Source: Hyphochytrium catenoides (taxonomy: Eukaryota; Protista; Hyphochytriomycota). From it: a stretch of 64,000 nucleotides of DNA. The notes under the pieces were generated by a model. The model saw nothing but the letters and a program-made list of their open reading frames with translations, did no database searches and was not told the DNA's origin. The DNA is taken from the NCBI GenBank assembly GCA_900088475.1, contig FLMG01003337.1:82091-146090 (forward strand), in the 5' to 3' direction. Position 1 is the first letter of the stretch; every line of letters starts with the position of its first letter. Both the position numbers and the translations under genes were made by a program. Of the stretch, positions 19,120 to 53,371 are shown piece after piece.

Positions 19120-20738
19120 TTACCGAATGGTGTTACGACGACAGATGCTACCTCTAAAGCGCTTGTAAGGCTCCAGCAGCATGCGGGCTACTTCTTCATC
19201 GATGGGAGCCCAAAAGTACTCTTCAGAGCCTCGCTCTTGAAAGGACGCCAGCATCATCTGACGAAGCCCATCGCTAATATTTAGCTCGAGCGGGGCGTTA
19301 CTCTTGATGTAAACCTCTATCATCTTTCCCGTGGCGGCCTGCCGCTCTTCAGGTGGGAGGCTCTTGAAGGCCACAGAGGCCTTCACGTAACAGCCGTTCT
19401 CCACACAGAATTCCGTCACCAGATAAGAGGAAAAGAGTTGCAGCAGCTCTGAGCTGCTGAGGAAGAGGCGCTCTTTCAGCTCCGTACTAGTGTGCAGTGC
19501 AGGCACGCTGGACTGTTGTGACACGTCGGCTACTTTCCGCGCCAAGTCTGTGAACATGGAATTCTTCCTTTGGTTGATATTATATCGAGAACCTCCTTTT
19601 CTCTCATAGGCAAAGGAGTAGTAGAGCAGCCGAACCGGGTAGACCCATGTGTAAAGGTGTGCAGCCAGCATGTACGAGAGAGCAGCGCCTTCGATGTAGT
19701 TGTATGCCTTGTCAGGATCTTGCTCCCCTTGCGATATGGCAGACAGGATGTCATAGCCCATCATAGCAAAAAGGATGACCGTAGCCGCGCTAATCAAAAG
19801 CGACTTGAGACCGAACACTTCCTTCACATTCCTCAGCAGCGTGACGGAGAGAAAGAAGAGGACGAAGGGATAGAGGATCCCGTTCGCAAAGTCCAATTGG
19901 AGCTAGAAAAAGAGAAGATAAAGGAAGCGTTACAATGGGCATTCAGCAGTCGGTCTAAGAAATGACAAGATGGCTTTGGCCCAGGAGGGTCTACGTGTCT
20001 ATGATGTAAAGAACTAACATCTATCACCGTCAAAAAATGACGAATGCAAACAGGGCTAGAGGTGACGGCACGAATCAGGAAGAGGAGGATAGATAGGCGT
20101 TAGGAGGATCAAGGACTTACGTCAGTAGGTTCAAAGTTGAGGCATTCAGCACTGGCGTGAGCATGGGACCAGTACGGAGCAACCCTCACCGCTCTCGGGA
20201 TCACTGAAAGCCATGCCTCCACCATGCAGACCACTGCCACAGCGGCAATGAACTTTTTGTTGGTCAGCGAATGATAGTGCCGTACCACCCAGGAGGAACG
20301 CCCTTCAAGCATATCTCTGTTATAGTCGTGCTCCAGCCGTACGCGAATAACGGAAAGGATAAGGCACCAAGCCAGCGGGAACAGTAGCATGTCCCATCCT
20401 AGAAGCTGTAGCCAACAAGGTGCACCAGAGAGAAAATGCTGAGCACAAGCCAAAATGGCTAGCATCACACCAAGTTCACATACTATCAACGCGTTGACGT
20501 TGATAATATAAAGAGGGAAAGTCTTCCGCCTAAGATACAGGAGGACAATAACAATCGAGGAAAGTGTATAAGCGGAACAGAAGATTGCTCCTTCGAGTGC
20601 CGCAAAGAGTTCTGGACGGTTGTCCACGTCCTCCTCCTGACCCAAAGAATTTTCTCCCCCTTCTCCTCCGCTACTAGCATCCGCCAGGCCCGCCAGTTGC
20701 GGAGATGATACCATGTCTTCGAGGGACAACTTGCTCAT
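19120..20738 (-). CDS. 7TM-RGS protein, paralog A (2 exons: 20738-20121, 19902-19120)
   Basis: Seven hydrophobic segments, including PCW at the start of TM3, followed by an RGS box: LFSSYLVTEFCVEN...YIKSNAPLELNIS...LEPYKRF. One phase-0 GT-AG intron at 20120-19903. Confidence 0.9.
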
Positions 20739-23700
20739 TATGTTTCTTTGCGTCACCTTGAAGAATATGTCTCTTTTTTTCGTCTCTCTGTTCGTTCACT
20801 GCCTTCCCAAACTGTTTGGAAGGTAGCTTTCCAAGCGATAAGCAAAAGGAGGAAGTGACGACTTTCTGTGAAGCAGAAGGAGGGCCTCAGCAGAGAGCTA
20901 ATATCCGGCTTGGCACCGTGATGATGATGCGTTCTCGTCTTCGACTTTACGAAGGAAGATCCAATGCTTTGATGGCGAATACTAGACTGAGACGGTTTGG
21001 CAAAATGACAGTGGCAGGACCAAAGACTTCGCGGTGCTTGCGTGCCTGGGTTGCCGTCGTCTTTGTCGTCTGGCATTCCCCAGCTGGGTATTGGAGTAGT
21101 ACAGAGTTGAAGAAGTAAGAGAAAGAGGAAGGAGAAAGAACGAGGAGATAGCCTAGGATGGGCAGATTGCTACGCACTGGTTTAGGGTTGATCAGTACCG
21201 CGGGCCAGGTACCAGAAGGGGAGAGATGCTGGTGGCGAATACCAAGAGAAGAAAAGAAAGCGAGAAGAGGATCAGCCTGGGAGAGGAGAGCCCTGAAGAA
21301 GCCCGCCTCACTAATAGCGCTTCTTTTTCAAGGGCTCTTCTCCTGATGAAGGAGCGAAGACATCGAACGGAGAGAGACAGGACGTGGAGAGAAGAAGGGA
21401 AGTCAACGAAAGACTGGGTTCCAAGATTGGAAGGTGGTCAACATTATTTCAGAGGCAACGTACGCAGTTTATTATTAGGCCGCACCAATAGAGCAGATCC
21501 TCATCCTCATCCTGCCTGCTGCAAGCTCAGCTTCTTGCAGGGATCAGAACCCAAAGAGTTCTACTCCGGCACTTGTTGGTGTCTATCTCTTGCATTTGTT
21601 ACTATTATACACCTCGTGTTTGTCTGTGGGTCGCAAAGGTACTTCTCTGGTCTGTCTTTCCCTCCTTGCTTCTCTCGCTCCCTTCCTTCTCGATCCCACT
21701 CACTGCCTCCTTTTTCTGTGCCTCTGTGCCTTCTCCCTGCCTCGTCCACCTCTCCTTTCAGTCCTCCTCACATAATAATAGGGGACCGCACTAGCGGCTA
21801 TGACTCTAGTCATGCATCATGTTATGGGGACATTGATGGTTGATGTCCACCTGACTATAGAGGCTAGCTGGCTTTCCCTCATGCTTCTCTTCCTTCTTTT
21901 CCTCCCTTTCTTGTTCTTCTTTGGCTCTCCCATCTTTCGCCTTCTCATCAGTTCTCTCTTCTTCCCTCAATCCTTCTTCTCTCCTCTCATCACCAGCCAA
22001 ACCTTCCCTCCCTTTTAAACCAGCACATTTGCACCTGCACCTGCTTGATAACCGCCTCGTCCACGGCCAGAACATAGCTACCAGCAGCCACCGTTCAAGG
22101 CTCGGTTGTGGTTTTTGACCCTACTCCGTCTCCCCTTCTCGTACGTCCCGTCACTTCATCACGTCACTCGATCGTTACGCCTCCCTAACACGACTCCATC
22201 TGTTCTCCTCTGGACTCTTGGTTGTTACGCTGGGAAGAAGAGCTGGTAGGCGCATGCTAAGGAGAAAAGTGGAAGAAGAACTGAACGAAGAAGGATCATC
22301 AGGAACAGGTGCAAGCAGTGAGAGTGGACGATGGAGGAACAAGTGAAGGGCGAGCAACAGGAAGGGAATGAGGTGAATTTCTTGACATAAAGCACTGTGA
22401 GAATACAGCAAAAAGGGAGAACAAAAGGTACGAGTCAGCGCAGAAGGAAGAGCCAGGCCGAGGCCGAGAGAGAGAAGAGAGGGCGATCTGCTTGGGGAAG
22501 GCTTTGCTGTCCCATCGTCCCCTCAAGTGCCTGCTCTTGCCATGCTGCCCGTCTGTATAGCCTTCCTAAGAGTAGACCTAGGACGAGAGGCGAGCTGCTG
22601 TGCCAGGCTCAATCACACGCCAGCCGAAACCTTTGCACATGGACCATTTCAAAACCAAAGCACCGCCCCACTTAGCAGAAGAAGAAGCCTATTCTACTTG
22701 GTTGACACGTGGTCCCAGTAGAGGAGTAAAACAGAAGTGTAACGGCCTCAGCTTTCAAAGTTTTGGATCTTAGTCTGTCCCTCCCTCTCTCCCTCCTCCA
22801 GCTCCTCCTCCTCTCTCGCTATCGCTTCGCCCTATGGTTCGGTGCTGGCACTCCAGAGCTTGCTCTGTCTGTTGGTCGTCTGCCTCTTCTCGACAACGAT
22901 CTTATACGTTTGCCTCTGCTCCCTCGTCTCCTCTTCCTTGGGTTCGCGCGGTTCTCGATATTCATTATCACGTGCTCGCTCTCGGGTTCTTTGCCTTTAT
23001 TTGTTCTCTGTCGTCCTCCCAGCTTTCGGGCGTAGTGCATGGTTTGGTCTCGTCAACTATTCAAAGTGGTCGTCGAGGGAACTCTTGTTGATCCTCCGAT
23101 CTTCGCGTCCCTTCGGGCTCTTCCTCATCTCTATCTTTCCCGCCTCGGTTTTAAGAGCCACCCGTTCTTCTTCTCCGCCAGTCCTTCCTTCCTTCACTCC
23201 TCATCTGAATGTACTATCATATCTCAGCGGCCACCGTGATAAGCCGAAGAACCTTTCAGACTCAAAGCGCGTCGGCAATCGCTTGAACTTTTATAATAAA
23301 ACTCTTAAGATCAACAATCTCCTTTCCTACTTCGAAGACTTTGTTCTCCCGAGTTTAATGACTGATTGGTATATCGCTCTCGTCAACTTTATCAGCCTGT
23401 TCCCTCACCGCTGGCTTACATACGATACCAGCGCTTGTCCTTCTTCCTTCGGTTTGTTGTTGCGAGTGAAGAAGGTACACTGTCATTTTTTTTCCTACTT
23501 AGACCAAACTGTGGCTTCCATACTTCCTCCTCCCGACAGGGCACTGTCGTGCTTTAACACCCATCAGTCCAAATAATGTTTCCAATATATTCTTCTTCGG
23601 AGGACCCCAGCAGCAGCAGCACATGACGCTAATAAGCCAAGAGACACAAGGCACGGCCGGTAGCGTCTGTCTGATGGATTGATTGATGTGATGATGAGGT

Positions 23701-24597
23701 CTGTGTCACTTAAGGCTCCCTCTACGCGCAATCTTTTGTCATTTGAACATGGTCCGGTGGCTAGCCATTGGATAGATGTTGATGGAAGATAGAGCTTGTT
23801 CTCGACGTTTGTAAGGCAATGGAGGCGCATCAAGCTGATAAACTATGCACTGTCCTCATTTGCTTTAATTCACCACTGTCCTTGTACGTGGGCTGCTGCT
23901 GGCAGTCTTAATAACCATTCATAACATGCTCACCATAGATTAGAAAGACAGTGGTGGCTTGACCGTTGCTCATCAACCACATCGGCTATGCAACAGGTCA
24001 CTGCCCATCCTCCTATGAATCCTGCATACGTACCATGGGCAGGCTTTGAGGAAACACGAGGTAAAGGAAGCCGTAGAGCCACGCCACCACTAGGTGGGCA
24101 CAGACTATAGAAAGCGCTGGATGTCAGCTGATAGAGGATGGTGGACCGAGTAAGAATATGCCCTGCGAACCTTTCATCAGATTCATGCCTTAGTAGAGAG
24201 TACTACTATCTGCAGCGGCACTCAGAGCCTCGAACACTAAGCGCCGCATAGATCTGCTATTATCTCCCTTACTGGCCCCTAGCCGACAGCAAGTAGAGGA
24301 GACTCCTGACCATTACCTGGTCCCGCACAGGTGTGGAGGACGATCAAGACGCCAGCGTGAAGAGAGAGGCACCTGAGCTGACAACCTGCAGCATAAAGCA
24401 TCCGGGACGGGTTCGCCTGGGGCTATGACGTGACAAGAGGTGCTGCTAAACCTACTCGAAGACAACAGAGGCCACTGCTGGATATGACCAAGTCCAGATT
24501 TTTAAAGGTGGAAGTAGTGTGATAGGGCGAACGTTGCCTCTAGTCTTGTATGAGACCGTCACGCAATCCTTGAGTTTGGAGAATCTTGATGGAGCGG

Positions 24598-24837
24598 CTA
24601 GAGTCTTTGGTCCTTATTATTCCCTGACAACCTCTGTTTTTCTTCCAGCTGCTGCTGATAGGGTTGTTGAAGGGGAGCTTGTGCCGAGGGAGGTGGCGGA
24701 GGAGGAAGAGCTCTTTTCGGTCCCCGGATCATGTCATACCGCGTGAAAACGATGCCTGCGGTCACGATTCCTTGAAAGACAAGCAAAGCCTTCCAACGGT
24801 GCTCGTATAGGTAGCTCGCGAAGCCTCTGGAGTTCAT
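24598..24837 (-). CDS. Putative small single-pass membrane protein (79 aa)
   Basis: ATG-started ORF with one hydrophobic helix (WKALLVFQGIVTAGIVFTRY) and a Pro/Gln-rich tail; no recognised family. Confidence 0.4.
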   Translation of the reverse strand: MNSRGFASYLYEHRWKALLVFQGIVTAGIVFTRYDMIRGPKRALPPPPPPSAQAPLQQPYQQQLEEKQRLSGNNKDQRL

Positions 24838-28639: not shown

Positions 28640-30303
28640 ATGGCCTCATCAGAACTCGTAGGGGAGACGAGATCAGCCTCAACCCAGGCAGTAATGGCGG
28701 ATGGAGGAGCCAGGGCAGACGATGAAACCAGTCAAGAAGTGGACAACCGTCCACAGATTTTTGCTGCTCTGGAAGGAACAATCTTCTGTTCAGCTTATGT
28801 ACTGTCCTCAATCGTGATAGTCCTCCTTCATCTAAGGCGGAAGACTTTCCCTCTGTACATACTGAATGTTAATGCGTTGATAATCTGTGAGATAGGAGTG
28901 ATGTTAGCCATCGTGGCAAGTACACAGCACTTCCTTCCAGGTGCACCCTGCTGGTTGCAGCTTCTTGGGTGGGACATGCTGCTGTTCCCATTAGCTTGGT
29001 ACCTCATCCTGTCTGTCATCCGCCTTCGGTTGGAGCATGACTATAACAGAGATATGCTGGAGGGGCGGGTCTCCTGGGTGGTGAAAAATTATCACTGGCT
29101 GACCAACAAGAAGTTTATCGCCTCTGTGGCGCTGATCTGCATGGTGGAAGCCTGGTTATCTATGATTCCCCGAGCTGTGCGAACGGCCGCCTATTGGTCC
29201 CATCCTCACGCCAGTGCTGAGTGTCTCAACTTTGAGCCCGCAGATGTAGGTGCCCGTACCTTATTTAGCTGCTCTACTGCAATATTTGTTGAACTTCTGT
29301 GTCGTCCGGGCATATCTATCAATAACCTTCACGTCTCTTCATCCAACTTTTATAGTTCGTTTATCTGTAGCTTGGCATGTCATAGAAGTGTATCGTCATT
29401 TCCACTGACTCTGCGCCGTCCCTCTGTCTGCTTTTCTCCTTACCAATGCAGCTGCAACTGGACTTTGCCAATGGTATTCTCTATCCTCTCCTCCTTTTCC
29501 TTCTTTCCGTAACAATGCTCAGAAATGTGAAAGAAATCTTCGGCCTCAAACCTCTTCTCATCGGCGCCGCTACTGTCATCCTCCTTGCTATGATGGGCTA
29601 TGACATTCTAACCGCCATAGCACAAGAGGAGCAAGATCCTGATAAGGCTTACAATTACATTGAAGGTGCCGCTCTTTCTTATATGCTTGCTGCACACCTC
29701 TACACGTGGATCTACCCAGTTCGCCTTCTTTATTACTCATTCGCCTACGAAAAGAGGGGATCGCAGTACCGCGGCCGAGAGAGGAAAAACTCCATATTCA
29801 CAGATTTGGCTCGGAAGGTAGCCGATGAGTCTCAACAGTCCAGCGTTCCTCCGTTGCAGACGAGCACCGAACTTAGAATGCGTCTCTTTCTAAGCAACTC
29901 AGAATTGCTCCGTCTCTTTTCTTCTTACCTGGTGACCGAATTTTGCGTGGAAAATGGTTGTTACGTAAAGGCATCTGTGGCCTTCAAGGGTCTCCCGACT
30001 GAGCAACGCCAAGCTGCGACAGACAAGATGATAGACATCTATATCAAGACCAAGGCTCCCCTAGAGCTTAATATCAGCGATGGCCACCGGCAGATGGTGC
30101 TGGCGTCTTACCATGAGCGGGGCTCTGAAAAAAGCTTCTGGAACCCCATCGACGAGGAAGTTGCGCGGATGTTGTTGGAGCCGTACAGACGCTTCAGAGG
30201 CGCCATCTGCCGCCGTAATACAATCTATTATGCTTGTTTAAGATTGGATGAAGCCCACAAGATGAGCAGCGGCAATCAATTGATGATGCGGCTTTATGAC
30301 TAG
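28640..30303 (+). CDS. 7TM-RGS protein, paralog B (2 exons: 28640-29245, 29452-30303)
   Basis: Near-colinear paralog of A with the same intron position (CLNFEPxD|LQLDFANG) and RGS box EFCVEN...APLELNIS...EPYRRF. Confidence 0.9.
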
Positions 30304-32269: not shown

Positions 32270-33112
32270 ATGGTCAAGGAGCTATCCCCTCCTGCACTGC
32301 GCACCTTCCTCTCAATCCTTCCGTGCTTGCTGGTGCAAGTGCTCTACCTAAGTCCTCTATTCTCGGTGCGGGAGATACTGAAGAAGAAATCGACAGAGGA
32401 CAAGAGCCCCATGCCGTTCATCGGCATCCTCAATAATGGGGCAATTTGGTCCCTCTACGGGTTCCTGGTGGCGGATCTCACAGTCGCCATTCCCAACATT
32501 ACAGGTGCTATCCTTGGCATATTTGGCACAGCAGTGTTCTCCAAATACTGTCGGATGGACGTAAGACCTTATATCGCTGCAGCGGCTGCCATAAATGTCA
32601 CGGCTGTTGTTATCGCAACTACAGTCCCAAACCCACCTGCTCCGGCGATAGTGGGATATCTTGGGTGTGCCGTCACCGTTATTCTCTTCGCATCCCCGCT
32701 GGCCACAATTGTGCACGTTGTCCGGACAAAGGACACCTCGTCTATGCCCTTTCCTATGTCGGTAGCAGTCGTATGCAATGCCCTCAGTTGGGTTGTTTAT
32801 GGCGTACTTGTGGCTGAGGATATTCTGATTTACATTCCCAACGCCATTGGGCTGGCTTTGGGGATTCTACAACTGTTTGTCTACGCAAGATATCGCAGGT
32901 ATAGCCGTGAGCGCAATAGCCTTGTGACTACTTGTTGCGGAGACAGGGACTGTAGCCCTCACCACCACTTGGTGACAAGTGCTTCGTCTGAGGGAGGGGA
33001 CCTGAAGAAGCCAACTAGGGGACAAGGTGAAAGCGATGAGATGGAAAACGATGGTAGGGCACCATCACCTATCCTCTCTAGACCCGGCGTGGATTATGTT
33101 CCTTTAGCTTAG
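32270..33112 (+). CDS. SWEET (MtN3/saliva) sugar transporter, intronless
   Basis: Two MtN3 repeats: LSPL..ILKKKSTE..PMPF..WSLYG..PN and FASPLATIVHVVRTKDTSSMPFP..WVVYG..IYIPNAIG. Confidence 0.95.
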   Translation: MVKELSPPALRTFLSILPCLLVQVLYLSPLFSVREILKKKSTEDKSPMPFIGILNNGAIWSLYGFLVADLTVAIPNITGAILGIFGTAVFSKYCRMDVRPYIAAAAAINVTAVVIATTVPNPPAPAIVGYLGCAVTVILFASPLATIVHVVRTKDTSSMPFPMSVAVVCNALSWVVYGVLVAEDILIYIPNAIGLALGILQLFVYARYRRYSRERNSLVTTCCGDRDCSPHHHLVTSASSEGGDLKKPTRGQGESDEMENDGRAPSPILSRPGVDYVPLA

Positions 33113-34301
33113 CTTCATGATCGCATTTCGGCTGGAAGGATAGCAAAGTTCTCACGGTAGTAGAATGACCAAGCATTCTGTTTTGGTAGCTGAGATTCAG
33201 TTCACGAGCCAGAGGATGAGGTGAGCTTCTATTCGGCAGCACTGATGATGTGGTTGCTGGGTTTCTATGCTTCTGGTGGGCGGTTGGGTTGGTAAAGCTG
33301 CATAATAGAGTGCCGCCCAGGAAAATTACATCAAGATAGTGATCACCAGGCAAGCAAGCATCGTTGATCACGGTGCGAAGGAAGGGAAGGGGACAGGCAG
33401 GCGTTTAAACTAATTTGGAGACAAAGGCCGTCGCTTCCTTAATTACAGAAGACTGCAACCTATCTCTCCAAGTCGTCGCAGGTAGTTCAGTACGTACTAC
33501 GGTCCTTAGTACAACCAAAAGACTCTCTGTTTGTATCCTAATCCAGCTGTCAGCTTGGAAGTATATATTGTCATTAATTGGCTTCGCCCCAAGGTCTCGA
33601 TTGTATGGAATCAATGTCTTATCCATCGTTTGCAACAAGATTTGCTTCTTGTTGAGGCGGGCGAGGAAAGAGTGAGGTGGGTGAACCACGCGAATAGTTG
33701 TACATGCTGCTGATATGGATTATGGCACTCGAAAGGCGCGAAAGTTGAGAGAGTAGAAAAAAGGTCGCGTGAGTCTCAACCTAACAATAGGGTGCAATGC
33801 CACCCCAACCGCTGACATAGTAGTATCTACATGTTCTTCTGGTGCTGCAGCAGCCAAGCGATTCCTTGTGCGGACCAATGGCCATCTCATACATGCTACT
33901 GCACGGTCTTTTGACCCTAAGCAAGCAATTTCCCGTCTGTGCAGGGTAACTGTTATCTAAATATTACCCGGTCCACATGCTTGACTATCCAAATCTCGGC
34001 CACCCGCACGTAGATCTACCTCCTTGCTATTGGGTCCCGCTAGTTCGCAGCGTTGCGTTTCTATCTCTTGCGTGCTTCCCAAATTGTACCGAGGGGTTCA
34101 TCAACCTGAAGATAACGCGGCACCAACAACGATCGTAGCACTATGGCCGAGAATGCAATCGTGATAGTGCTTTCCTCCTTCTTGGTCCTTATAATATCTG
34201 TACAGTTAGTGTATGGTGCCCATGATGAGAAGGGGCGTGAACAGTTGTAAGGGACTATTCGTAGCAAGAGAGAGAGAATCGAAAAGGGAAAGGACACACA
34301 G

Positions 34302-34307
<6 letters not shown>

Positions 34308-34361
<54 letters not shown>
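34308..34361 (+). repeat. (AG)n microsatellite
   Basis: Near-perfect AG run. Confidence 0.95.
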
Positions 34362-35329
34362 TTCCGCACCTCAGATAGAGAGATGATCCCTAGTTAGAGA
34401 CATAGATAGATCCTTGTATCTTTCACGTGCTGAAGTGCTGTAAGTGCTGATGATGGCAGCTTGGCCTTCTGACCTGCGTCAGTAATAATACTAGCACCTC
34501 AACCTGTCAAGGTATAGGAGATGTAAAATAGTACGCTGGAGCTGAAAGGTTCTGATCATCTAACCATCCATTCCCACTACCCCCATATTACTACTTCCGC
34601 CGTATGCTTTATATATACGCGGGTGATTATGATTATTCACGTTTATTATTACGTAAGTCAAGCGTATGGGTTCTGATGGCCAACCTTGGACCGAAGAGCT
34701 GCTTTCCTCCTCCTCCTTCCTTCCTTTCCCTCCTTCCCTGGTACACAAGGAGCTGGTGATTGGAGGAGAAGTGAAGAAGAGAGAGGGGAGCGATGGAGAG
34801 CGAGAGGCAGAGAGAGAGAATGGCGGGAGAGAGAAAGATAGCTACCGAGAGGAAGATGAGAGAGAGTGAAGGTGACAGAGGGAGAGAGAGAGAGAAAGAG
34901 TGAAAAGAGGACCGTGCGAGAGAGGAGAGAGGGGCCAATAGCGGGAGAGAGAGAGGGAAACGGAGCAAACATAGACGAGGAAGGACAACGACAAGAAAGT
35001 GGGGAGTGGAAGGGAGTGAGGTGGAGACTGGGAACAAGAGAGCACCTACAGTAATTAAGATCCGGTCATACCAGGGCTTGGAAAGTATAATTGGAGATAA
35101 GAGAGAGGGAGACGAATTGTGGAGACAGGATAAACGTCTTCCAGACAGCGTGCGAACTTGCAAAACAAGGCAAACAGAGGAGTGCTAGGCCCTACTGCTC
35201 CGGCGCCCGTCCAACTCCCTCGGAGGCAGCCACTTTAGCAGCATCAAAGCTCTGCTGCATACGCCCGCGAAGACCGCTTTGTACTTCATCGTGTCCTGTT
35301 TTCAGAGGTCCATCACACGTCTATCCACT

Positions 35330-37650
35330 ATGGCGTATGGGGAGAGGTCACCGCTTCTGGCCTCTCCGACGAAGGGGGCAGCAGAGGAGAAGCAGGAAAG
35401 CTTTGCCTGGACGGTGGCCGTAATCTCAGTCATGGGAGTTCAGATATCTGCAGCTACTATTGCCCGCATCCTGCTTGGATCTATTGACGTCGGGTTCTTG
35501 GGACATCTAGGAGGAAAAGAGTTAGCAGCTTCCGCAATGGCGCAGTTGTACACCAGCGTGCCGCTTACCTTTGTCTGGGGTACCACGGCTTCCCTCATCA
35601 CGGTAGGGACAGGAGTAGTTGTGGAAGTAGGAGCGCGATACATAGAGAGAGAGAGACTCTGGAGGGACATAATGAGTAGAGAGCTCTTTCTAATTGTCAC
35701 TTCTAAGACCTGAAGGTGCATCTACCTTACACCTAGCTTCTTTTCTGGTCAATTGGTAGCTCACTGGGCTCTTGGTTACTTGTTGCAGCTCTGCGGTCAA
35801 GCATATGGAGCCGGAAACTACAAGCTCGTCGGCACTTGGCTGCAGTTCGGTCTGCTTTTTTCTTCAGTTGCAGCGATACCTGTCTTTGTTTGCTTCTGGT
35901 ACAACCGTGTGCTTCTTTCGTTGACGCTTGATGACGCGGAGGTGGTAGAGCTCGGCAGTCTTTTCTCTCGAGTTATATCCATTTCCATCTGGCCCCAGTT
36001 GTGGTATGCCTGTCTCAGGTCAGTGGCTATCTATCAATCCACTCTCTGTCTGGCCGCAATTCTCTTCAGTCTCCTAGATGATAATGGCTGCTGCATCTTA
36101 CTTGTCAATCTTAAACTCTCTCGACCGTATATTTGCGTTACCCCTCCAGGAAGAGCGCAGGCTGACCTGGGCTGGTTATACTTTGGTTGACAACCTCTGC
36201 CTTCTCCTTTGCGTTGCTCATAAGTCATCTTTAGATAGCACTTCTTTAACAGCTTTCCCATAATCTGTAGGCAGTACTTCCAGTCCATGGGTTACATCTA
36301 CCCCACCACCGTCACAGGCGTCTCCGCCGTTGCTGTCTCCGCCGCACTCAACTACATTCTCATCTTTGGTTGGGGCGGCTTACAAGGTCTTGGCTTCATC
36401 GGTTCCCCGATGGCTACTGACATTGCGGCGTTCTACCAGCCTCTCGTTCTATCTCTTTTCTGTTGTGTGGTCATGAAGTACCATAGAAAGACGTGGCACG
36501 GCTGGTCTCTTGACGTGCTAACCTGGGAAAGGTTGAAGAGCTTCCTCTCTATGGTAAGAAGGTTCTATGCAATGGGCCATATGTTTGTAGTTTCCCAGCA
36601 GCTGGGGGCTCTCTCACCGTCGCTTCTCTTGTCTCGCTGTACCTGCCACTTCCAGTCTCCTAAGCTCTTTGAATGTCTCTAGTCTGAGCCTTCACAATCA
36701 TTTTCGGTCGGTTCTTCTTCTCCAATCCTGTGTGGATAAGCATACTATCTTTCAACTTTAGCTTTCTTTCCTGATTAACATTTTCCTGTCTTTAGGCTGT
36801 ACCAGTTGCGGCGGCTGACACCGTTCCATCCATCGCACTCTCAATGGTTGGGGCCATCGCCGGGCGGATGGGTTCGGACGTAGTAGCCGCGAACTCTATT
36901 GTCTCTGGTCTCTGGAGCATCATGTGGGCTCTCTTTTGGGGCTTTGGATGCGCCTCTCAGGTGAAGGTGGCCAACTTTCTCGGCGCAGGGAAGGCAAATT
37001 CAGCTCGTCGAGCGCTGCAAGCAGGCATCCTTTGCACTGTGGTCATTGTCCTCGTCATTCTGTCTCTCACCACGCTCTTCAACCACCAACTCTTTGGCCT
37101 GTACACCACCGACCTCACCATCATCGAAAATTGCAAATCCATTTGGCCATGGGTAGCCCCTGGGTTTGTGATTGAGAGCTTTGAACTGTTATTTATGTCG
37201 TGCTTCCAAGGTATGGGCGAGGTCGGTCGGACATTCTGGGTGAATACCCTCTCCACTTGGCTCGTACACCTACCGTCCGCCTTCCTCTTCGGAATTTACC
37301 TCGACTATCGCCTGAAAGGTCTCTGGATGGCAAGCTTACTATCTGAGGTTGTCAAGCTTGCGGTCTTTGCTTGGTATATGATGAATGTGGACTGGGAAGC
37401 GCAGGCGATGAAAGCACAAGCCCTTGCAGAGGTAGAACAGGCACAAGGTGCACCAGAAGACGATCAAAAGACTGTCAACGCTGAGATTGGAATTGTAGAG
37501 GCCCAGCTGTCCAGCCCCCATCTACCTATGACGCCGCAAGCTTCGTCACTCCTTCGAGTACGCGATACGATGAACATCAAAAACAAGCTCCGACATGACG
37601 CTGCCGAGGGTGAATATCAAAAGTTGAAGCGCACCATTTCTGCCATATAG
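35330..37650 (+). CDS. MATE family efflux transporter (4 exons, approximately 35330-35602, 35789-36018, 36271-36552, 36797-37650)
   Basis: DVGFLGHLGGKELAASAMA, LCGQAYGAGNY, RQYFQSMG, GLGFIGSP, VANFLGAG and GLW motifs; N-terminal ERSPLL dileucine motif. Confidence 0.93.
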
Positions 37651-38857: not shown

Positions 38858-40505
38858 ATGGCTAGAGCCTTCCGTTTCGAAGGAAATATAAACTGGTTTC
38901 CGGGCCATATGACCAAAGCCTCAAAGTCCATTGAAGGATTGGTCAAGAAGGTGAGGTCAGAGGACTCCTTAATCTGCCTCCACTCTGTAGAAGCCGCGTT
39001 CTTTCTAAGCCCAGTCGCCTCCTCCTCCCTGTCACTTGCTTACTGCTTTCCCTTTGCAGGTAGACCTAATTGTGGAGGTTCGGGACGCAAGGATCCCTTT
39101 CTCCAGCGTAAACTCGCATCTGGAAAGCTTAACGCAACAGAAAAAGCGACTTGTTGTGTGCAATAAAAGCGACCTCTCGAACTCCCGTATGAATGAAAGA
39201 GTCAGAGCTATATTGAAAGAGGAGCAGGGGCATGACTGTCTCTTTACCTCTGTCACTAAGGGCAGTAGAGTCATGGACGTCATTGACTGGGCCAAGAGGA
39301 CCGCCAAACAAGAGTTCACGACAGGAGGTAACCCCCACATCTTCACTATGCAGACCTGCATGTCACCTCATGCTAGACTTCGGATGTAGAAGTAGTAGAC
39401 TTCTGCCTCGTAGTCCCGTACGCTCTGATTTCCTCTTCCTATTGACTTCCTTCGTCCTGTTCACTGGGTGGTCTTGGTCGCTAGGTATCTTGACACCTAA
39501 ATTACCGTGCTTTGTTCTCTCTTCTCTCCTTGGACAGTGGACTCTTCCCTACCATTTTCGCCCTCATTTTCTCCGTGCTATAGCTCTGGCATCCCCGTAT
39601 CTTCGGAGCCTTCTCACCGTTCTCTTTGAATTATGATCCTGGTACAGCTCTCTCTTTTCTCCACATCTCCTCCATCTTCACGCCCATCCTTCACATTCTT
39701 GCTAGGCACCATGCTCATGGTAATAGGCATGCCAAATGTCGGCAAGTCCTCATTAATCAACGCACTTAAAGCAAGATCCACGTCACTGGAGCTCCGAGGC
39801 AAGCGTTCTGCCAAAGTTGGCCCAACTCCAGGCGTCACACTTCAGACAAATCAATTTAAGGTGAGCCTCCACGTGTCTTCGCCAGACTCCTCGTCTCTCT
39901 GTTGCCAAGACGCTTGCACTAAAGTTCTGGCCCTGGTGACTCCGTTTGTCCCCACGCCTTACCCTTGGCATGCTTTATGCTACGAAGCTCTATCTTTCCC
40001 TTCTTTGTCTTCGCTATAAACGCTTTTTGTCGTTGCTTGCCTCAACCCTTTCTATTGCTTTCCCTTGGCCAACCCCAACCCTGGTGACGGCCTGAAGATT
40101 GCAGTTTCTCCAGCCATTTACATGGTGGACACGCCTGGAGTCTTTGTTCCGAAAGTTGAAGACCCGGAAGTGGGTTGGAAGCTAGCGTTAACGGGAGCTG
40201 TACGCGACTCAGTCGTTGGAGAGACTGCTCTGGCCGAGTTTCTTCTCTACACTCTCAATCTGAGGTATCCTAAGAAATATTGCGAAGTGCTAGGACTGCA
40301 AAGGCCCTGCAGCGACATCAACTTCCTACTATCACTTGCCCAGAAAAAGGCAGGAGTGAATTCCGGCATGACTTCAGAAGAGCGAACCACTGCTGCAGCT
40401 CGGTATCTTCTCAAAGAATTCAGGAGAGGAGCCTTTGGACAGATAACACTTGATGATGTTGCCCTAGATGGAGGTGATGGCAAGAACACCAAGCCGAAGG
40501 GCTAA
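38858..40505 (+). CDS. MTG1: Mitochondrial ribosome-associated GTPase 1 (RbgA/YlqF circularly permuted GTPase), 4 exons
   Basis: INWFPGHM, VEVRDARIP, NKSDL (G4), GMPNVGKS (G1), PGVT (G2), DTPG (G3) in circularly permuted order. Confidence 0.93.
39340..39615 (+). pseudogene. Decayed fragment of 7TM-RGS paralog C exon 1 inside MTG1 intron 2
   Basis: 39459-39590 aligns to 50945-51075 at roughly 85% identity by hand count, with one indel and an in-frame TAG; weaker similarity continues on both sides. Confidence 0.8.
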
Positions 40506-41092: not shown

Positions 41093-44000
41093 TTATCTTT
41101 CTATTCCGTCGTTCATCACAAAGGCGGTCTCGTCTGCCAGTGTTCCTTGGCGGTAGCGGATTCGTATATCGGGTACATTGGTCATCTTTATATCTGTGGC
41201 AGCGGTGCAGATTGAGATTGAAGAACAGGTCAGTGGATAATAAACGAGGACCTGGCTTAAAACAGTAAATAGACGGGAAGGACAAGAAGGAGAAAGCAAC
41301 TATCTTTGCACTGCCAGCACTTGTTCCTCCTCTACTTTCTCCACTTACCATTGCCTTGAGCTCCCTCGAGATACCTGTCCCCAAGGAAATGCGCCTTGAA
41401 AGGGTGCTCAAAACCACTCTGCAGGACGCTGTTCCTGGCTATCTCACACATGTCTGCAGACGAAAGTTTCCACACTTGCGCAGCTACGGAATACTCCTCC
41501 ACCAAAGGATCCTAGGATGCGCAAGACGTAGCACGGCTTGTGAGAAAGGCAAAATAAGAGAATGTGGGCCCCATACCCGAAGGAAAAGCCACGAAGGATC
41601 GCGCAAGAGCAAACAGTGTTCAAGAGAGTGTAAAATAGTCTGCCAGAGGGGCGTGTACCCATTCCATCGACTTGAAGTAGCAAACAAGGCCATAGAAAAT
41701 ACACATACAAGGAGAGCCCACGAGAAGTGGGAAGAAAGGAAAGACTCTTCACCTTTGTATAGTGTAGCATAAGCGGATCATCTGTGCTGATGGACACATT
41801 GAGGCCGCGGGCAAAGTATACTGGAAATGGGTTTCTATGGTAGTCCAGGAAGAGACGGTTGTTACTGAGTGGCGACATCGCTATGCCAATCTGCTTCAGG
41901 TAGTAGAGATACTGCAGACCAGGGGACTTGCGAAGCATGATGCCATGGTTGATCTGTAGTTGACGCCATGTGTCTCGTTAGAACAGTAACAAGAAACGAG
42001 ATAGGAGAACAGGCTCTTCGTGGGAAGTAGAACTTGAATAGTTAAAAAGTTCACATATGCAAAGCGAGAAAGCAAGAGATTGAAAGGAAGCCGACAAATG
42101 AGCGTCAAAATTGTCCAAAATTTGTCTGCGCGAGATGTTAAAAGTTTGGAGCAGCATGCATCCGTCATCGCTGATTGCCAGCAGAAGATCATGCAGCGAA
42201 AGTTCGGGACACGGAGAGCACAGAAAGCTGGGTACCTGATCTGCAAAAAGGAAGGCGGCAGCTAGATGATCGGGATCACCCGCCTCCCCACAATGTGGCC
42301 GAAACTCAAAAGTGGAAAGGCCCTTTCCTGCCCGGAAGGTGTTCAGAGACTTCATGTTCGCACTTAGATAGTAGGTCCAGTAGTCATATGGGGGATTAGC
42401 ATCGAAGTTCCAGTCTTTTGGCTTTGGCAGGTGGCGGTGAGGTGTGGCTCGGATCTGGGAAAACAGAAATCAAGAGGAAAGTTAGAAAGCTATATGAAGA
42501 GAAGCAAAAGCAACCACTCCGAGAGGAATCTGCCAGCAATGACGAAGGCTAGGTAACAGGTATGCCAGCACACAAGCTGCAAAAGACCGGACTATCAGAC
42601 AAAGCGTAGTCCTGCCTTTTGGGCACGTCATGGCGTAGGAAGGAAAGGCCTAAATCTTGGTAGCTTACCGGCTCTGGCTTGCTTTCATCATCCACGCAAT
42701 CGAAGCCCACCACCGTGGCTAGGAAGATATGTAGTGCAGGGTTGGAAGAAGGGTCTAGAGAGACTTCAAAAAGAGGCTGGAAGATGTTGTCGATCATATC
42801 TTCAAAGTTGTCGATGTCTCCAGAACTGTAACAGTGCGGATCAATAAATGAAAGATAAGGGCAGAAAGGTGAGAAGGTGAGCAGGCGTGGCGGCCAATGG
42901 AAATGGAAAGCTGGTGAGCAGTCATGGAGGGCAAGGGAAATGAATCGCAAAATCCATAACATCGCGGATAAAGTGCAGGGACAATGCATACCCTAGGGTT
43001 CATAAGCGAAGTGGAGAATATTGGAAAGAGGAGATGAACTTGGAGAGTACGACCAGACCCCTTCCGCTCGTCGGTAAAGCCTCAAGTTTCTTACCGCTTA
43101 TAAACGTGATATAGCCTGGGTATCTGTATGATCCAGCGCACGTGGTAGGCCGCTAGCTTATTGGTGTAAAACCAGCGGGCAAGCTTATCCCATTCGGAAC
43201 CCTTTCTCCCATAAATAGAGAGACGCCACTCCACGAGCTGGTACTTTGTTTGCTCCAAGTCACTCATAACCTCTTTCGTTAGCTCTGCTAGATACCTACG
43301 AAATAGAGTCGTAGTCAGAGAGCATCTGTGAGCGAGAGGCAAGCAAAGGCATGGTAGGAGTAGGCAGATTACTATTAGCAGAGCCACAGAGTGTGCCTAG
43401 CTCCAGNNNNNNNNNNNNNNNNNNNNNNNNNNNNNNNNNNNNNNNNNNNNNNNNNNNNNNNNNNNNCATAGCTTGGCCTGCCGCTGTACAAAGGCTAGTG
43501 CTCTGGAGACGGCGGCCGCACACATAGATAACGTACGCCTAAAGAAGCAAAAGTTCTCTTACCGCCCAGCTATGAGGTTATCGGTTTTCAAAAATATCTC
43601 TCTCAATCTGCTCTGTCCGCAGGGGTTGTACTTCAAGTTGAAGCGATCAAAGCGGTGGAAGGTATTGGTGGCATGCATATCCAAAGTATCAACGCTACGT
43701 CGGGAAAAGGGGGTGAATGGGTCAGAAGCACTATTGAGCAGAAGGGACACGGTTCCACGGATATTGCAGGGCAGCAGTGCGGCATTATTGTTCGTCATAA
43801 AACATCAGACCCCTGACAAATCTCCCTCTACTCATGTTCGCAACATGGCGGTCCGGACGGCCGTCAATAACAGTACCTCAGGTCATAGGCAGTGAGATGT
43901 AGAGAGTGGAAGACCTCTTTGAGCGTCATGAACCTCCCATCTCTATAAATCACCATTTCCTCAGGGCTTCGTCTGAGCTTGCTTTTGATAAATCGCAAAA

Positions 44001-47070: not shown

Positions 47071-47432
47071 ACGTCTAAGATTCAGTGGAATGAGAAGATG
47101 GAAAGGTAGGTGATGATGGCAAGCTTTGCCTGAAGATTATTGATTGCATCATTAGAAGAACAATCATAAATGTCCAAGCGAGCGGAGGAAAGGAGACAGA
47201 GCGACAAGCAAGAAGACAGAGTACTATTACTAGATGTGGTTGTGACACGTCTAACATTCAGTGGAATCAGAAGATGGAAAGCTAGGTGATGATGGCAAGC
47301 TTTGCCTGAAGAAAGATTGATTGCATCATCATAAGAAGAAGAATCAATGAATGTCCAAGCGAGCGGAGGAAAGGAGATAGAGCGACAAGCAAGAAGACAG
47401 AATTACTATTACTACTAGATGTGGTTGTGACA
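47071..47432 (+). repeat. Direct tandem duplication, two imperfect units (~176 and ~186 bp)
   Basis: Both units begin acgtctaa(g/c)attcagtggaat and end tagatgtggttgtgac; they differ by small indels and substitutions. Confidence 0.95.
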
Positions 47433-49061
47433 AAGCAACAGTCAAAGGAACAGGTAGCAAGAAGAAGAAGAAAGTATTATTCTAAGGATAAGAAGATTGT
47501 GGCATCAAATCAAACCAACAAAGACAGAGCAAGGTAGGAAGAGTTGGGACTGACAGCAGCAGGTAGTAAAATGAAAGCTGAAAGTGTGGCAAAGACTTAA
47601 GAGTCCTCAACAAATCCATCGTTTGAGCTCCGGCAAAGCTAAGAATGAGGTGACCGAGGTGGCGAACTTCTCGCCCTGTCATCATCACTAGTAAAACAAA
47701 CGTCGTAAAGATATTTAAGGTGACTGAATGCCCGATATTTCTTCGCTCGTTTCTTTATAAACGCTCTTGAAGTTACTAATACTACGCTCTGCCGCAGAAG
47801 AAAAAGCCACTAATAAAGCTCGGCAGGCTAGTGGACATGAGAAAGCGAGTCGTATAATCCTTTACTCCTCTCCTCTTAAGTCACTCCTGTAGTCCAAAGC
47901 AGCTGCACCCGGCCACAACCTACCGCATATCTCGTCGCGGAATGACTGATATGTGCATACTTGACACCTCGCCACCTCTGCAGGACCCAGCAGAGAGATT
48001 AATAAATTGACCTTTGCTTCTTATTCTGGACTCCTAATGCAGGACGTACACTCCCTTCTCTTGCGTGCAGAATGGAAAGACTAATGGGCGATGGACGAGG
48101 TATTTCTAATAACCATGTGCATGTGAGCAACAACAAAGCAGACTGGCCCCTGACAGCAGACTTATTATAGCATATCAAGCTGTTGACTATTTCCCTTGGA
48201 AAAAAGGGAATCGAAGGTTAAGGACTCAAGCTAGTCACGGTCGTCATCATGCTGCTATTGTTTGTTAGCGCTAGGTCAACGAAGAACTCTTGTTCTTCTT
48301 TTTTGTTTCTGAGTAGATGCTTGAGTCGATGGCTGTATGGATGGCAGCTCCGTCCGAGTCCGCCTGTTTATAAAAATTCTTAAGGCTGAAGTCACTAACT
48401 CAAACAATTTAGATTCTGAACGGACAGGCATCCTCCTTGAGTAGAAGCAATGCTATCTCGGATGTCTCTGAAGTACCGACAAGGGAGAAGTGGTAGACAC
48501 CTCATGCAGCCTTGTGACCTCCTCTTCCGTCGCTCCCAAAGTGGGGAAGGGGAGGGTAATTATTATTATGTTGGCCTGTGTCCCTTCTTACCTGCCATTG
48601 TTTCTCTGCATCTGTAATCGACAGTATACAAAGTATCATCGCCCGCCTACCTTCTTGACGAACCTCCTCCTTCTTCTCCTCTTTTCGTGCTTTCATGGCC
48701 CATGCGCACAGACACTCGTCTTCTACTCCGCTATATGATAGTGCTAGTACCCTTCTCTTTCTTTCTGCTCCCGCTGTTGTCTGGCAAACTTCTCACTCCT
48801 TCTCTCTCTCTCCTCGTCTCTTCCCCTTCTTCCGCCTCCTGAAGATCTGCCTGTCTCTTGTCTACCTGTAAAAACCTAGCGACAATGTAACGTCTGCCTG
48901 ATGGGAAGAAATCAGCTCCAGGATGGGTGGTACCAGAGTAGTAGAAGCTGAATCCCTTTGGCTTCTCAGCGATTACTAAGGTGGGTGGGAGGGACACCAA
49001 TAAGAGAGAAGCAGAGTTTGTAGTTTGTAACGGCTCCAGGAAAGGCTGGCTCTCTTTCTAT

Positions 49062-49108
49062 CCTCTCTCTCTCTCTCTCTCTNNNNNNNNTCTACCTCTC
49101 TCTCTCTT

Positions 49109-49147
<39 letters not shown>
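49062..49147 (+). repeat. (TC)n microsatellite containing an 8-N gap (49083-49090)
   Basis: Seen directly in the sequence. Confidence 0.9.
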
Positions 49148-50516
49148 TTTTTGTTCCTTCCTCTCTCTCTCCCTCTCGCCGGCCAGTCCATCATCTCTTC
49201 TCCTCTCTTCCCTTTTTTTCAGTACCCCATTCCTCACTTTTCTCTGCATCCTTCTTGGTCTCTGTGAGAGCAAGCTGTACGGCTGGCTTATCATCAATGG
49301 CGAATGTATGCAGGTAGAGGAAGCCGAATGAGAGGAGAGAGGCTTTGAAGGCTACCTCTTATTATCCTATAAGCCGCTTACTACTGGGAAGACTAAGTCT
49401 GCACCGCATCTTTGGGTCCTCTTCCTCCTCACTAGCACAGAGTTTCCCTCTTTTTGAATGTAACGCTCTCAATCTCTCTTTAGCCATTCGCCTGCTATTT
49501 TATGCAGTAAACCTGAGCTGAGAGAGAGAGTAAGACCTTATATTAGACCAGAAGAGAAGAGAAAGAACAGGAAAGTTTCACCGACACGAACATTGATGAC
49601 CTCTCTCCCCTTTGGTCTCTTCTCTTCCTCCGTTTAGATCCTGCTCACCATTCAGCGAATTGTGGTGCCTCCTCCATCCTCTTTCCGTGGTGACGCAGAG
49701 CCTTCTCCTTCCATGATGGTCATATAGCTCCCCCTCTCTTCTTCCTTTACTTTGCTGTCGTGGCACTTCTTCTCAGTTAACTCCTTTGGGGTGACCATCT
49801 CCCACGCTTTGCTGATGAACGTGGTAGTGCTGCTCTCTTAGCTGTCCTAGATTACTTCCTTGGGCCTTTCTCTAGGGATGATAATTCTTCCTCGTCACTC
49901 TTCTGTCTCGCACTATTGTTATGCGTCTGGTGCTTTTTATTATCTTAGAGTCCCATCATCCTCGAGAGATTATTAACAGTTACAAAGTGCTTCCGGCTCG
50001 CGCTCACGATTGAAGGGCATCTTTTGACTATCAGCATCTCCACCTACTACTCCATCTGCCATCCGCCCCACGCTCTTCTTGCTCACTATCTTGCTTGATA
50101 ATCTTTGTCTCCTCCTTCTATCACCTTCCCTCTCGCCCCTCCACCTTGAGCTTACGAAGCAGGGATGAGATCTTTCCCCATTTCACTAGTCTTACACAGC
50201 TGATCCGACTAGAAGAGCCAGGCCATTGTAGACTATTCAATTCCACGCTTTCCTTACAGGCGCGCGCCATTCTTTGATTGATGCAGGAAGGGAGTTCGCC
50301 CACTTCATACATTCACTCTGTTGACCAACGCCCACGCAGGCGCTGCTGACGTCTCAATCCACTTGTCTGTGTACTTAAAATGTGGCATAACTTGGTCGAG
50401 GATGACTGAGAGCGTTGCTCGCAACTGGTGGGCTGCTGAAGTATAGCTGGCCCGTGCTACCTTGGACTACTATATAACACTGGTTGGTTACTACTGCTCT
50501 AGGAAGCGTCTTCAGG

Positions 50517-53371
50517 ATGGTTGGACTACTTATCTGGTGCTCTCCACGAATGGTGCTTGGATGTCTGCTCGTCTCCTGCCTGTACCTTCAGACTCATTCC
50601 GTCCTGGTGGAAAGCAAAAAGCCCACGTCGGAGCATATCGCAAGTGAAGGGCGGGCCCCTTCAGCATTGCCCTTCTATACGACGCCAGGACCTGTTCTCC
50701 ATTATGATGAGCCAGCTGGCGTCGGAGAAGAAGGCAACAGCACTAATGGAACAGATACGAGCAGCTTAATTCAGAGTCCCGACACTTCTGAGGTCCTTTG
50801 GCAATATTACCCCACCCTGATTCTAGTCATCCTTTCGTTCACTGTCTCATACACTTGCATCATTCTCATCTACCGCAGACGCCATCTCTATCCCCTGTAC
50901 GCGCTCAATATCCCTCTGATTATTGGCAATGAACTCGTTGTGCCGTTCACTGTGTGGTCTTGGTCGCTAGGTATTCTGACACCTAATGCACCGTGCTGGT
51001 TCTCTCTTCTCTTCTGGGGCACCGGACTCTTCCCTACCATGTTCGTTCTCATTTTGTCCGTGGTAAAGCTATGGCTTGACTCGCGGTATCAGTTTGACCT
51101 TCTTAAGTACTGCAATGGGAGCTTCAGCTCTAGCAGCGGCGGAGGTGGTGCATGTGGCCCTAATTCTCCATTGGCACCTAAGTCGGGTACCAATCAACCC
51201 AATTCCAGTAGTGGGCCGGTTTCCATTTCTACTCCTAAACCAAGGCTCAGTCTGGGTCCCAGAGTCTACCTCGATCCTAGCTCTATGGCTGGGGATGGCG
51301 AGGTTCCCGCTAGCGGCAGCCGAGTCAGCTTCACCGGCGCTGATTCTTCTTCAGCTGCGGCCACGAATGCACATGCCCCCGCCAAACCACGAGGTAGCAT
51401 GTCTTCTACTGCTAACCAAGTCCATGCCCCTCGCCCTACAAGACACAACAGTAACTTGAGCATGGGCCCTGATCTCAGCGGAAATCCAACCATAGCTCTC
51501 CTAACTTATCCTGGGACTGAAGGTGCTGCACCTAGTGGTGGCCCTAGTGCTCAGCCCGGTCCCCCGAACCTTCTTGGTGCTGCCGGTCGTAGAAGGATGA
51601 GTAGTGCGGTGTCTGTCACTAGTCTTTTAACTGCTGCTGCTAGTGAGGAGAAGATAGCGAAGACTTGGGTGCTGAAACATTATCACTGGCTTACCAGTCC
51701 CAAGTTTCTGGTCCCTGTGGCCTTTGTCTGCTGGATCGAGGCCTGGATTCCTACTCTGTTAAGAGGCATCCGTGTCTGGAGCTTTTGGAACGACTCGGCG
51801 ACCGGATCAGGGTGTGCTGACTATCAAGAACTAGAGGTGGGCCTCTCCATATATATATCTGTCCTCCCCTCCATTAAAGCCACATAGTGGGTTTACACTG
51901 TCAGATTATACATTATGTACCTGTCAAGCCACAGTCACTCCTTTTGACCCTTTATTCTTCTTCGTCTTACCGTCGCAGTCTAAAAGCTCTTGCTGAATGA
52001 ACTCTTTGCGCTTTACAGAACAATTGGGACTTGGCCAACTACTATATATGGGATGCCAGCTGCGTCTTCCTAGCCATCTTTCTCCTCCGCCATACTCGCG
52101 AGGGATTCAATATGAGAAGACGCTTTATTCTGGCAGGCCTGGCGCAGTTTGTCGCAGGCGTATTCTACTACCTGTGGGTCTCTCTAGCTGTGCTATTCGA
52201 GGAGAAAGGGGAAAGCGCCCGACAAGTTTACGTCATGGTGTCCGGTGTGGCGGCGTTTATTACCTCCCTCTCTCTCTTTATCTACACGCTAGCCGTGCCG
52301 TTCTCAGCCCTTATGGCTTCTTATGCAGCTGAGAGGCTTCAAAAGGTGAAGGAAGAGGGACTGGCGGCTTCGGACTTGGCCTCATCTGCAGCCGACAGCA
52401 CAGCAGGCTCCGATGGACAAGCCCTACCGGACGGTTCCCAAGAGAGCAGGGGGAGGGTTGTGCAGAAGAGGGATGACGTCAAGCGGCTCTTACTAGGAAA
52501 TGACGTGGACCACCTCTTTCTGAACAAGTTCCAAGGTTGGTGGACAGAGTCTATCCCTCTTTTCATATACTTGCGACTCCTCACTAGCTAAAAGAACCTC
52601 TGCGACTTTCTGTGGCCTCATTCAAGCTTTACCGGAGGTCAAATTTGAGTGACAAGTTCATTATCCGTCCGGTATGCCTGGGTTCTAATACTGAGCTAAT
52701 TTGTCGTCCAGAGTACACCGCGTCAGAGTTCTGTGTGGAGCCTATGGTCTTCATGATGAGTCTTCGAAAGTTCAAAGCTCTTCCAGAGGCGGACAGGAAA
52801 GCCCGCAGAAAGTTGTCCATCCATATATTCCGCTCGCATATCCAACCAAACTCCACACTGGAGCTCAATATCAGCCAGGATATGAAGCTACGCATCATAG
52901 AAGAGATGAAACAAAAGGGAGGCGGCGAGGATCCTGGCTTCTGGGTAATCGGCCACCTATCGCTCTTCTGTCTTCTGAGTGGGCTCCTCTGATTCTTAGT
53001 ACTACGTTTAGCATCCTTCATCTTCTCTTGACAGCCACCCCACTTAAGCCATTCTTTCGTCAATATTATCCATGATTGTTCGTGAGCAGTGCAAGGTTGA
53101 GTTCCTCCGTTACGTTTTTTTTTTCTTGCCAGCTGCTATGCCTTTTTGATTGCCTTAACCATCACAGAGTTACCTTTTTAATGTCTAGAAGATGATTGCA
53201 CGCATTTACTGACATTTCTCTCACTCTCGTGCTCCCTATCAGGACCCTACGGCAGACGAAGCCTGTTCACTGTTACTAGCTCCTCTGACTCGATACATGC
53301 AGGGCAGGAGGAGCTCAAACCTATATCGAAAGCTTTCTGCCGTCACACCAACTCCTAACACTAATGCATAG
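50517..53371 (+). CDS. 7TM-RGS protein, divergent paralog C (4 exons: 50517-51836, 52019-52535, 52712-52944, 53243-53371)
   Basis: Shares RRHLYPLYALN, APCW, WVLKHYHWLT and EGFNMR (equivalent to EVFGLK) with A/B, and the first intron position. RGS box EFCVEP...HIQPNSTLELNIS...FWDP. Also has a signal-peptide-like N-terminus. Confidence 0.88.

Follow-up and report, generated by a model that had tools for sequence, protein, structure and literature searches.

Three intron-bearing genes in a 64,000-nucleotide stretch of the Hyphochytrium catenoides genome (contig FLMG01003337.1, positions 82,091 to 146,090; hereafter the window, with positions counted from its first letter) each encode a protein in which seven hydrophobic helices precede an RGS box. 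We regard these genes, designated G1, G2 and G3, as probable functional members of a large H. catenoides family of seven-transmembrane (7TM) RGS genes, whose products would act as membrane-anchored GTPase-activating proteins (GAPs) for G-alpha subunits; we assign this reading a probability of roughly 0.62. The fusion of seven helices to a C-terminal RGS box, proposed for all three genes in a first-pass annotation of the window, was borne out by hydropathy, by matches of G1 and G2 to the Pfam RGS profile (PF00615) and, for G3, by a profile built from the family itself. Plants, fungi and many protists are already known to have the 7TM-RGS design, and the three genes are nothing new in kind; the main value of the analysis lies in a previously unreported family size in a stramenopile whose G-alpha genes are very few.

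The genes were modelled from six-frame translation together with splice signals, and the splice sites are predicted from consensus signals and from conservation among paralogs. Searches and folds of G1, G2 and G3 were performed exon by exon, hence the scores given below refer to exons and not to whole proteins. G1 lies on the minus strand. Its exon 1 (20121-20738, 206 codons, with the ATG at 20738) encodes the N-terminal tail, transmembrane helices (TM) 1 to 4 and most of the loop preceding TM5, and it ends at a GTAAGT donor; an intron of 218 nt in phase 0 (19903-20120, GTAAGT..TAG) separates it from exon 2 (19120-19902), which encodes TM5-TM7, a linker, the RGS box and the stop. G2, on the plus strand, has an exon 1 of 202 codons (28640-29245) encoding the N-terminal tail and TM1-TM4, with the Cys-Trp that precedes TM3 and the loop Cys (both invariant), a phase-0 intron of 206 nt (29246-29451, GTAGGT..CAG) and an exon 2 (29452-30303) encoding TM5-TM7, the linker, the RGS box, a C-terminal tail and the stop.

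G3, also on the plus strand, has a more fragmented structure. Exon 1 (50517-51836) starts with a stretch resembling a signal peptide; it carries N-glycosylation sequons and encodes TM1-TM4, the loop between TM3 and TM4 holding a low-complexity insert of ~190 residues. It is followed by intron 1 (51837-52018, 182 nt, phase 0), at the position of the G1/G2 intron, and by exon 2 (52019-52535), with three hydrophobic segments for TM5-TM7 and the linker. The RGS domain is cut by three further introns, its start lying in exon 3 (52588-52637), its core in exon 4 (52714-52944) and its last helix in exon 5 (53243-53371), which also encodes the tail and ends with the stop codon at 53371. The least certain of these is exon 3, too short for a score of its own and placed by splice signals and by its fit to G1, in which '..LIQALPE' followed by 'YTASEFC' aligns ungapped to 'LLQLFSSYLVTEFC' of G1. 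Exons 2 and 4 of G3 recur as full-length blocks in the paralogs at loci L016 and L017, and exon 5 is matched there from its residue 1; this recurrence of the exon ends supports the G3 model.

Against the PF00615 gathering cut-off of 23.9 bits, exon 2 of G1 scored 34.3 bits and exon 2 of G2 29.4 bits, both above it. For G3 we used a family C-module profile built from 16 C-terminal modules (TM5-7 plus RGS), to which the exons align collinearly: exon 2 covers profile positions 1-155 (62 bits), exon 4 positions 166-239 (57 bits) and exon 5 positions 241-257. An RGS domain in G3 is therefore likely by its alignment. The AlphaFold2 model of G2 exon 2, with a predicted local distance difference test score (pLDDT) of 80.7, comprises three long helices, followed by a poorly modelled linker and by an all-helical domain predicted with confidence, and this modelled RGS domain was superposed by Foldseek on RGS16, RGS8 and RGS4 with TM-scores of 0.77-0.80, normalised to the target.

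Glu87 and Asn88 of RGS4, together with Asn128, contact the switch regions of G-alpha. In the alignment of G1 with RGS16, 'TEFCVENG' stands opposite 'TEFSEENL' and 'APLELNIS' opposite 'APKEVNID'; G1 thus keeps the equivalents of RGS4 Glu87, Asn88 and Asn128, namely its Glu-Asn pair and the 'ELNIS' Asn, and G2 is identical there. The RGS boxes of the family share the consensus 'YLVxEFxVEN', 'ExNIS' and 'DPYxRF', and most paralogs retain the Glu-Asn pair and the Asn contact residue. This conservation of the residues that contact G-alpha makes a receptor-linked GAP role plausible for the three window genes.

By hydropathy, the first exon of each gene encodes four helices and the second two to three. 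TM7 in G1 and G2, like TM2 in G3, stays under the hydropathy threshold of 1.6, and clear helices stand at the same places in paralogs. No Pfam model matched the membrane part of the three genes. In an alignment of nine sequences that included G1, G2 and G3, several features were invariant, namely 'RR..P' following TM1, a Glu within TM2, 'CW' ahead of TM3 and a Cys in the loop preceding TM5. The two cysteines (in G3 numbering C160, within 'PCW', and C433, in the loop ahead of TM5) are positioned like the classic Cys pair found in G-protein-coupled receptors (GPCRs); they would presumably form a disulfide. G3 and some paralogs have N-glycosylation sequons in their N-terminal tails, and sequons also occur just before the loop Cys; this placement suggests that the N-terminus faces outward and that the RGS box is cytosolic. 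With this orientation the outward loops of the window genes are very short, and the insert of ~190 residues in G3 would lie in the cytosolic TM3-TM4 loop; it is largely specific to G3, its closest paralogs having only a short form. A further motif, 'LLRxVxxAF', is conserved after TM5 at the cytosolic face.

A complete fold was obtained for the full-length paralog L002 (contig C1791), a gene without the family intron, whose model shows seven long helices and an RGS domain (pLDDT 77). Residues 1-271 of this model match only GPCR bundles, of class C (GPR156, GABA-B, CaSR) and of class A (CB1, 5-HT1E, S1P, SSTR). VIA-align gave Z values of 14.3-15.4 over 220-250 residues; matches at a Z of ~15 had 230-245 aligned residues at a root-mean-square deviation of 3.5-4.6 Å. 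This supports no class assignment and, at a Z of ~15, is barely above the helical-bundle noise of the tool (~13-14). Foldseek returned probabilities of 0.99-1.0 for these matches, yet weak E values of 0.03-0.1. Since the Z values exceed the noise only just and L002 is a distant paralog, a GPCR-like fold of the window genes is likely rather than proven.

These features raise the question of whether the proteins could be true GPCRs, that is exchange factors for G-alpha, equipped with an RGS box of their own. One protein would then turn G-alpha on and soon off again, yielding short, sharpened signals in place of a standing repression. The family seven-helix domain, as modelled for L002, aligns with G-protein-coupled receptors of class A and class C, the GPCR-type Cys pair is retained, and 'LLRxVxxAF' lies where GPCRs contact G proteins. 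Nevertheless, a shared fold is no proof of GPCR function, and no activation motif of the DRY or NPxxY type turned up, although no search aimed at such motifs was made. To our knowledge, no exchange-factor activity has been reported for Arabidopsis RGS1 (AtRGS1), the studied 7TM-RGS protein. We consider receptors of this kind unlikely here, while receptors of the exchange-factor type and of the GAP type do coexist in several lineages (de Mendoza et al., PMC3971589).

The first-pass annotation had described a phase-0 intron shared by the three genes and situated after the Cys of the loop preceding TM5. The intron is indeed common to G1, G2 and G3 and in phase 0, but it does not follow the Cys directly, lying 7 codons (G3) or 8 codons (G1 and G2) past it, in the arrangement C-x7-[DE] and then GT. 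At least 13 paralogs on other contigs have an intron at the same position, with a GT donor after the aligned codon, an AG acceptor before the next one, or both. Hence the intron is old and family-wide and no marker of the G1/G2/G3 cluster. The locus L001 (contig C4284, open reading frame 901-2967) was considered as an intronless paralog and rejected, as its frame of 688 codons crosses a CT repeat at the family intron position; the stop-free intron of L001, read as 'LSLSLS...', mimics coding sequence.

G1 and G2 are divergent, in head-to-head orientation, with their start codons 7.9 kb apart. Their DNA similarity of 76-78% ends at the exon borders, and the encoded proteins are 78% identical in exon 1 and 83% in exon 2. 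Codon differences between the two comprise 183 synonymous and 89 amino-acid-changing ones. This excess of synonymous differences, together with the confinement of DNA similarity to the exons, indicates that both genes have been kept by purifying selection, and we interpret them, from sequence comparison, as old inverted local duplicates. The outward loops of G1 and G2 are 83-92% identical, on a par with the helices and with the RGS box, and divergence is confined to the N- and C-terminal tails. The diversified ligand-sensing faces that had been suggested for the family are therefore not found in this pair. G3, for its part, differs from G1 and G2 throughout.

A maximum-likelihood tree of 29 N-terminal modules joined G1 and G2 as sisters (support 100/96) and grouped G3 with L016 (contig C3767) and L017 (contig C4189) (99/98). 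The approximately unbiased (AU) test rejected the best tree uniting G1, G2 and G3, whose log-likelihood was 25.2 lower (p = 0.0027). The interpretation of the three genes as one local clade, the "local family" of the first-pass annotation, was accordingly abandoned, and by its phylogenetic position G3 belongs to a subfamily different from that of G1 and G2. By a rough estimate based on ~32 loci in 61 Mb, the chance of finding a third member within ~25 kb of G1 and G2 is a few percent. Since chance placement is this infrequent, an ancient array is possible as the origin of the position of G3, 20 kb from the pair, the other explanation being chance.

The intergenic region also contains a relic of 132 nt (39459-39590, plus strand) with 85% nucleotide identity to the TM2-TM3 part of G3 exon 1 (50945-51075), disrupted by a frameshift and a stop. 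The relic lies just upstream of the exon of a GTPase gene described below. This decayed G3-like fragment points to some local turnover of the G3 lineage and, with the in-frame stop observed in at least one paralog elsewhere (contig C3832), could be taken to mean that one or more of the three genes are unexpressed or decaying and that the cluster is a leftover of gene turnover. We consider this highly improbable, given that every exon of G1, G2 and G3 is open with splice signals intact, that synonymous differences prevail between G1 and G2, and that the exon ends of G3 are kept in L016 and L017. G1 and G2 may serve as clean, apparently intact examples of the family, and G3 as a divergent example with a large cytosolic loop.

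The genome searched comprises 61.0 Mb in 4759 contigs. PF00615 yielded 65 matches, and the N-terminal module of G2, containing four TM helices, yielded 35 matches at ~32 loci, with RGS matched just downstream in at least 29 of them. Some other loci match only TM5-7 and RGS. The repertoire is thus expanded, as the first-pass annotation had held, but it is spread over the genome and not mainly local. Members of the locus pairs L009/L014, L016/L017, L003/L004 and L030/L031 lie on different contigs and are separated by very short branches in the tree. Such near-identical pairs, among them those on contigs C4006/C2531, C3767/C4189 and C44/C325, may represent uncollapsed haplotypes of a diploid assembly, in which case the gene count would be lower.

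Outside this genome, only 15 of 1.84 billion representative proteins matched at E<=0.001 in an exhaustive HMMER search, the best of them a fragment of 238 residues with 39% identity. At the level of sequence the family is nearly private to this genome. A word-index protein search with G2 exon 2 had found nothing at E<=0.001, a blank that means little because the exhaustive HMMER search later found relatives that the tool had missed. In the ESM Atlas, exons 1 and 2 of G2 fell only into generic eukaryotic membrane or RGS clusters, with no useful relative among them.

Rhodopsin genes were noted on two further contigs. At locus L033 on C3799 (5375-8683), the first exon of a rhodopsin, in an open reading frame on the minus strand (1063-2145), is 100% identical over 194 residues to the cation channelrhodopsin HcCCR of known structure (8GI9, 8IFU), which identifies the genome as that of H. 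catenoides. On C2531 (68 kb; loci L023, L035, L036 and L014), the 7TM-RGS genes at 2321-5266 and 33966-35863 flank a pair of channelrhodopsin-type genes (7223-8107 and 15707-16882). The neighbourhood on C2531 is probably a coincidence, though the sensory genes sit close together.

The presence of G-alpha in the genome, on which the first-pass reading depended, was confirmed with PF00503, which detected two to three genes: one of full length on contig C3226 (364.7 bits), one with introns on C2421 and a partial one on C4706. The G-alpha on C3226 has an MGAC start and contains 'RTTGI' and 'DVGGQRNERKKW', with canonical switch I and switch II motifs. A complex prediction combining this G-alpha with the RGS box of G2 (exon 2 residues 125-270) scored 0.24, with the mark at 0.34, and weighs neither way on binding. 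No match in the genome was obtained for Ric8 (PF10165), in a search that is uninformative with split exons, or for G-gamma (PF00631), where such a blank does not show absence. In addition, the same genome contains candidate GPCRs of the Dicty_CAR type, resembling receptors for cyclic AMP (cAMP), at ~9 loci.

Several of the results weigh against the interpretation of the three genes as functional membrane-anchored GAPs. The numbers are lopsided, with ~30 receptor-RGS genes and 65 RGS matches versus two to three G-alpha genes, and many of the RGS boxes could be scaffolds. The core RGS exon of G3 taken alone reached 20.2 bits with PF00615, under the cut-off, so that the Pfam check suggested together with the first-pass annotation came out positive for G1 and G2 and fell short for G3. 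Moreover, G3 retains the Glu and the Asn of its 'ELNIS' motif, whereas Pro replaces Asn88. Finally, only the distant paralog L002, and no window gene, was modelled with its complete seven-helix fold, and the thin margin of its alignments above noise counts here as well.

The first of these points, together with the Pro of G3 and the loss of the Glu-Asn and Asn contacts in L002 and L008, could also be accounted for if the RGS boxes were mostly non-GAP scaffolds, like the RGS-homology domains of G-protein-coupled receptor kinases or of sorting nexins, serving trafficking or other signalling only loosely tied to G proteins; some RGS domains are known to have lost GAP activity (PMC3971589). Yet the contact residues are kept in G1, in G2 and in most paralogs, and the structures nearest to the RGS domain of G2 are R4-type domains that act as GAPs. 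We therefore judge it improbable that scaffolding is the prevailing role, and we retain the membrane-anchored GAP as the preferred interpretation.

As membrane-anchored GAPs, the proteins would have an outward N-terminus and a GPCR-like seven-helix bundle with its Cys pair, followed by a cytosolic linker and the RGS box. The latter would grip the switch regions of GTP-bound G-alpha and presumably accelerate GTP hydrolysis, its targets being the two or three G-alpha subunits of the organism, which may be self-activating, the non-animal mode of signalling envisaged in the first-pass annotation. The seven-helix domain would control the access of the RGS box to G-alpha, or its activity, through ligand binding, phosphorylation or internalisation, a mode of control modelled on Arabidopsis RGS1 and Magnaporthe MoRgs7. 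A more far-reaching idea, which we put forward tentatively and regard as rather doubtful, is that the ~30 7TM-RGS genes form the main chemosensory repertoire of the organism, sensing being accomplished by lifting or imposing GTP hydrolysis rather than through catalysis of nucleotide exchange. If so, H. catenoides would possess a receptor family that matches a small GPCR repertoire in scale and is opposite to it in sign, with many receptor-GAPs converging on two to three G-alpha subunits.

The region between G2 and G3 contains genes unrelated to the RGS family, namely a SWEET/MtN3 sugar transporter gene (32270-33112) and a MatE transporter gene (35753-37650), as well as a GTPase gene with an exon matching MMR_HSR1 (near 39633-40019). 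An AMP deaminase gene on the minus strand comprises at least three exons (43091-43387, 42549-42989 and 41444-41938), which together cover profile positions 286-543, the first of them positions 286-353. This first exon adjoins an assembly gap (a run of N at 43407-43466) that interrupts the AMP deaminase gene, the 5' part of which should lie beyond it. The possibility that this gap breaks a 7TM-RGS gene was ruled out by its position in the AMP deaminase gene, outside G1, G2 and G3. A second run of N, eight bases long (49083-49090), lies 1.4 kb upstream of the G3 start codon and likewise outside all three genes.

RGS, GPCRs and G proteins all go unmentioned in the paper on the H. catenoides genome (PMC5795050), and in the searchable literature we found no description of RGS or 7TM-RGS genes in Hyphochytrium. 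Proteins of this architecture are central to the debate on whether G-protein signalling outside animals operates through regulated GAPs or through GPCR exchange factors. With ~30 7TM-RGS genes compared with two to three G-alpha genes, this free-living stramenopile "pseudofungus" would offer a compact test system for this question, including the case of one G-alpha tuned by many receptor-GAPs.

The same fusion of seven helices with an RGS domain has been reported in many bikonts, chytrids, filastereans and ichthyosporeans (PMC3971589) and in Trichomonas vaginalis (PMC3865004), and a large expansion of RGS genes in a protist is known from Naegleria gruberi, which has 229 (PMC5784254). The H. catenoides genes share their design with those of other protists and of early-branching opisthokonts but differ in forming a family that is nearly private in sequence. 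Class VI receptors of fungi, represented by Aspergillus GprK and Magnaporthe MoRgs7, likewise combine seven helices with an RGS-type domain (PMC6405168, PMC10184898), and MoRgs7 is internalised with G-alpha and tunes cAMP signalling (PMC6405168). Here too the resemblance is one of architecture, and the ascomycete genes are single-copy whereas the stramenopile family has ~30 members. Among stramenopile relatives of the "pseudofungal" type, the GPCR-bigrams of oomycetes (GPCR-PIPK, GPCR-AC and others) are likewise fusions, in which a seven-helix receptor carries a signalling domain at its C-terminus; RGS, however, is not among the partners listed for them and is named only as a plant example (PMC6033456, PMC5784254). 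The best-studied model of a receptor-linked GAP is AtRGS1, the 7TM-RGS protein of Arabidopsis (PMC3386157, PMC12017998), to which the proteins described here are likened by the same order of domains, with seven helices leading through a flexible cytosolic linker to a C-terminal RGS box in which the G-alpha contacts are kept. In contrast to H. catenoides with its ~30 genes, plants have one or few copies, and the window genes differ further from AtRGS1 in their very short outward loops and, in G3, in the large low-complexity loop between TM3 and TM4.

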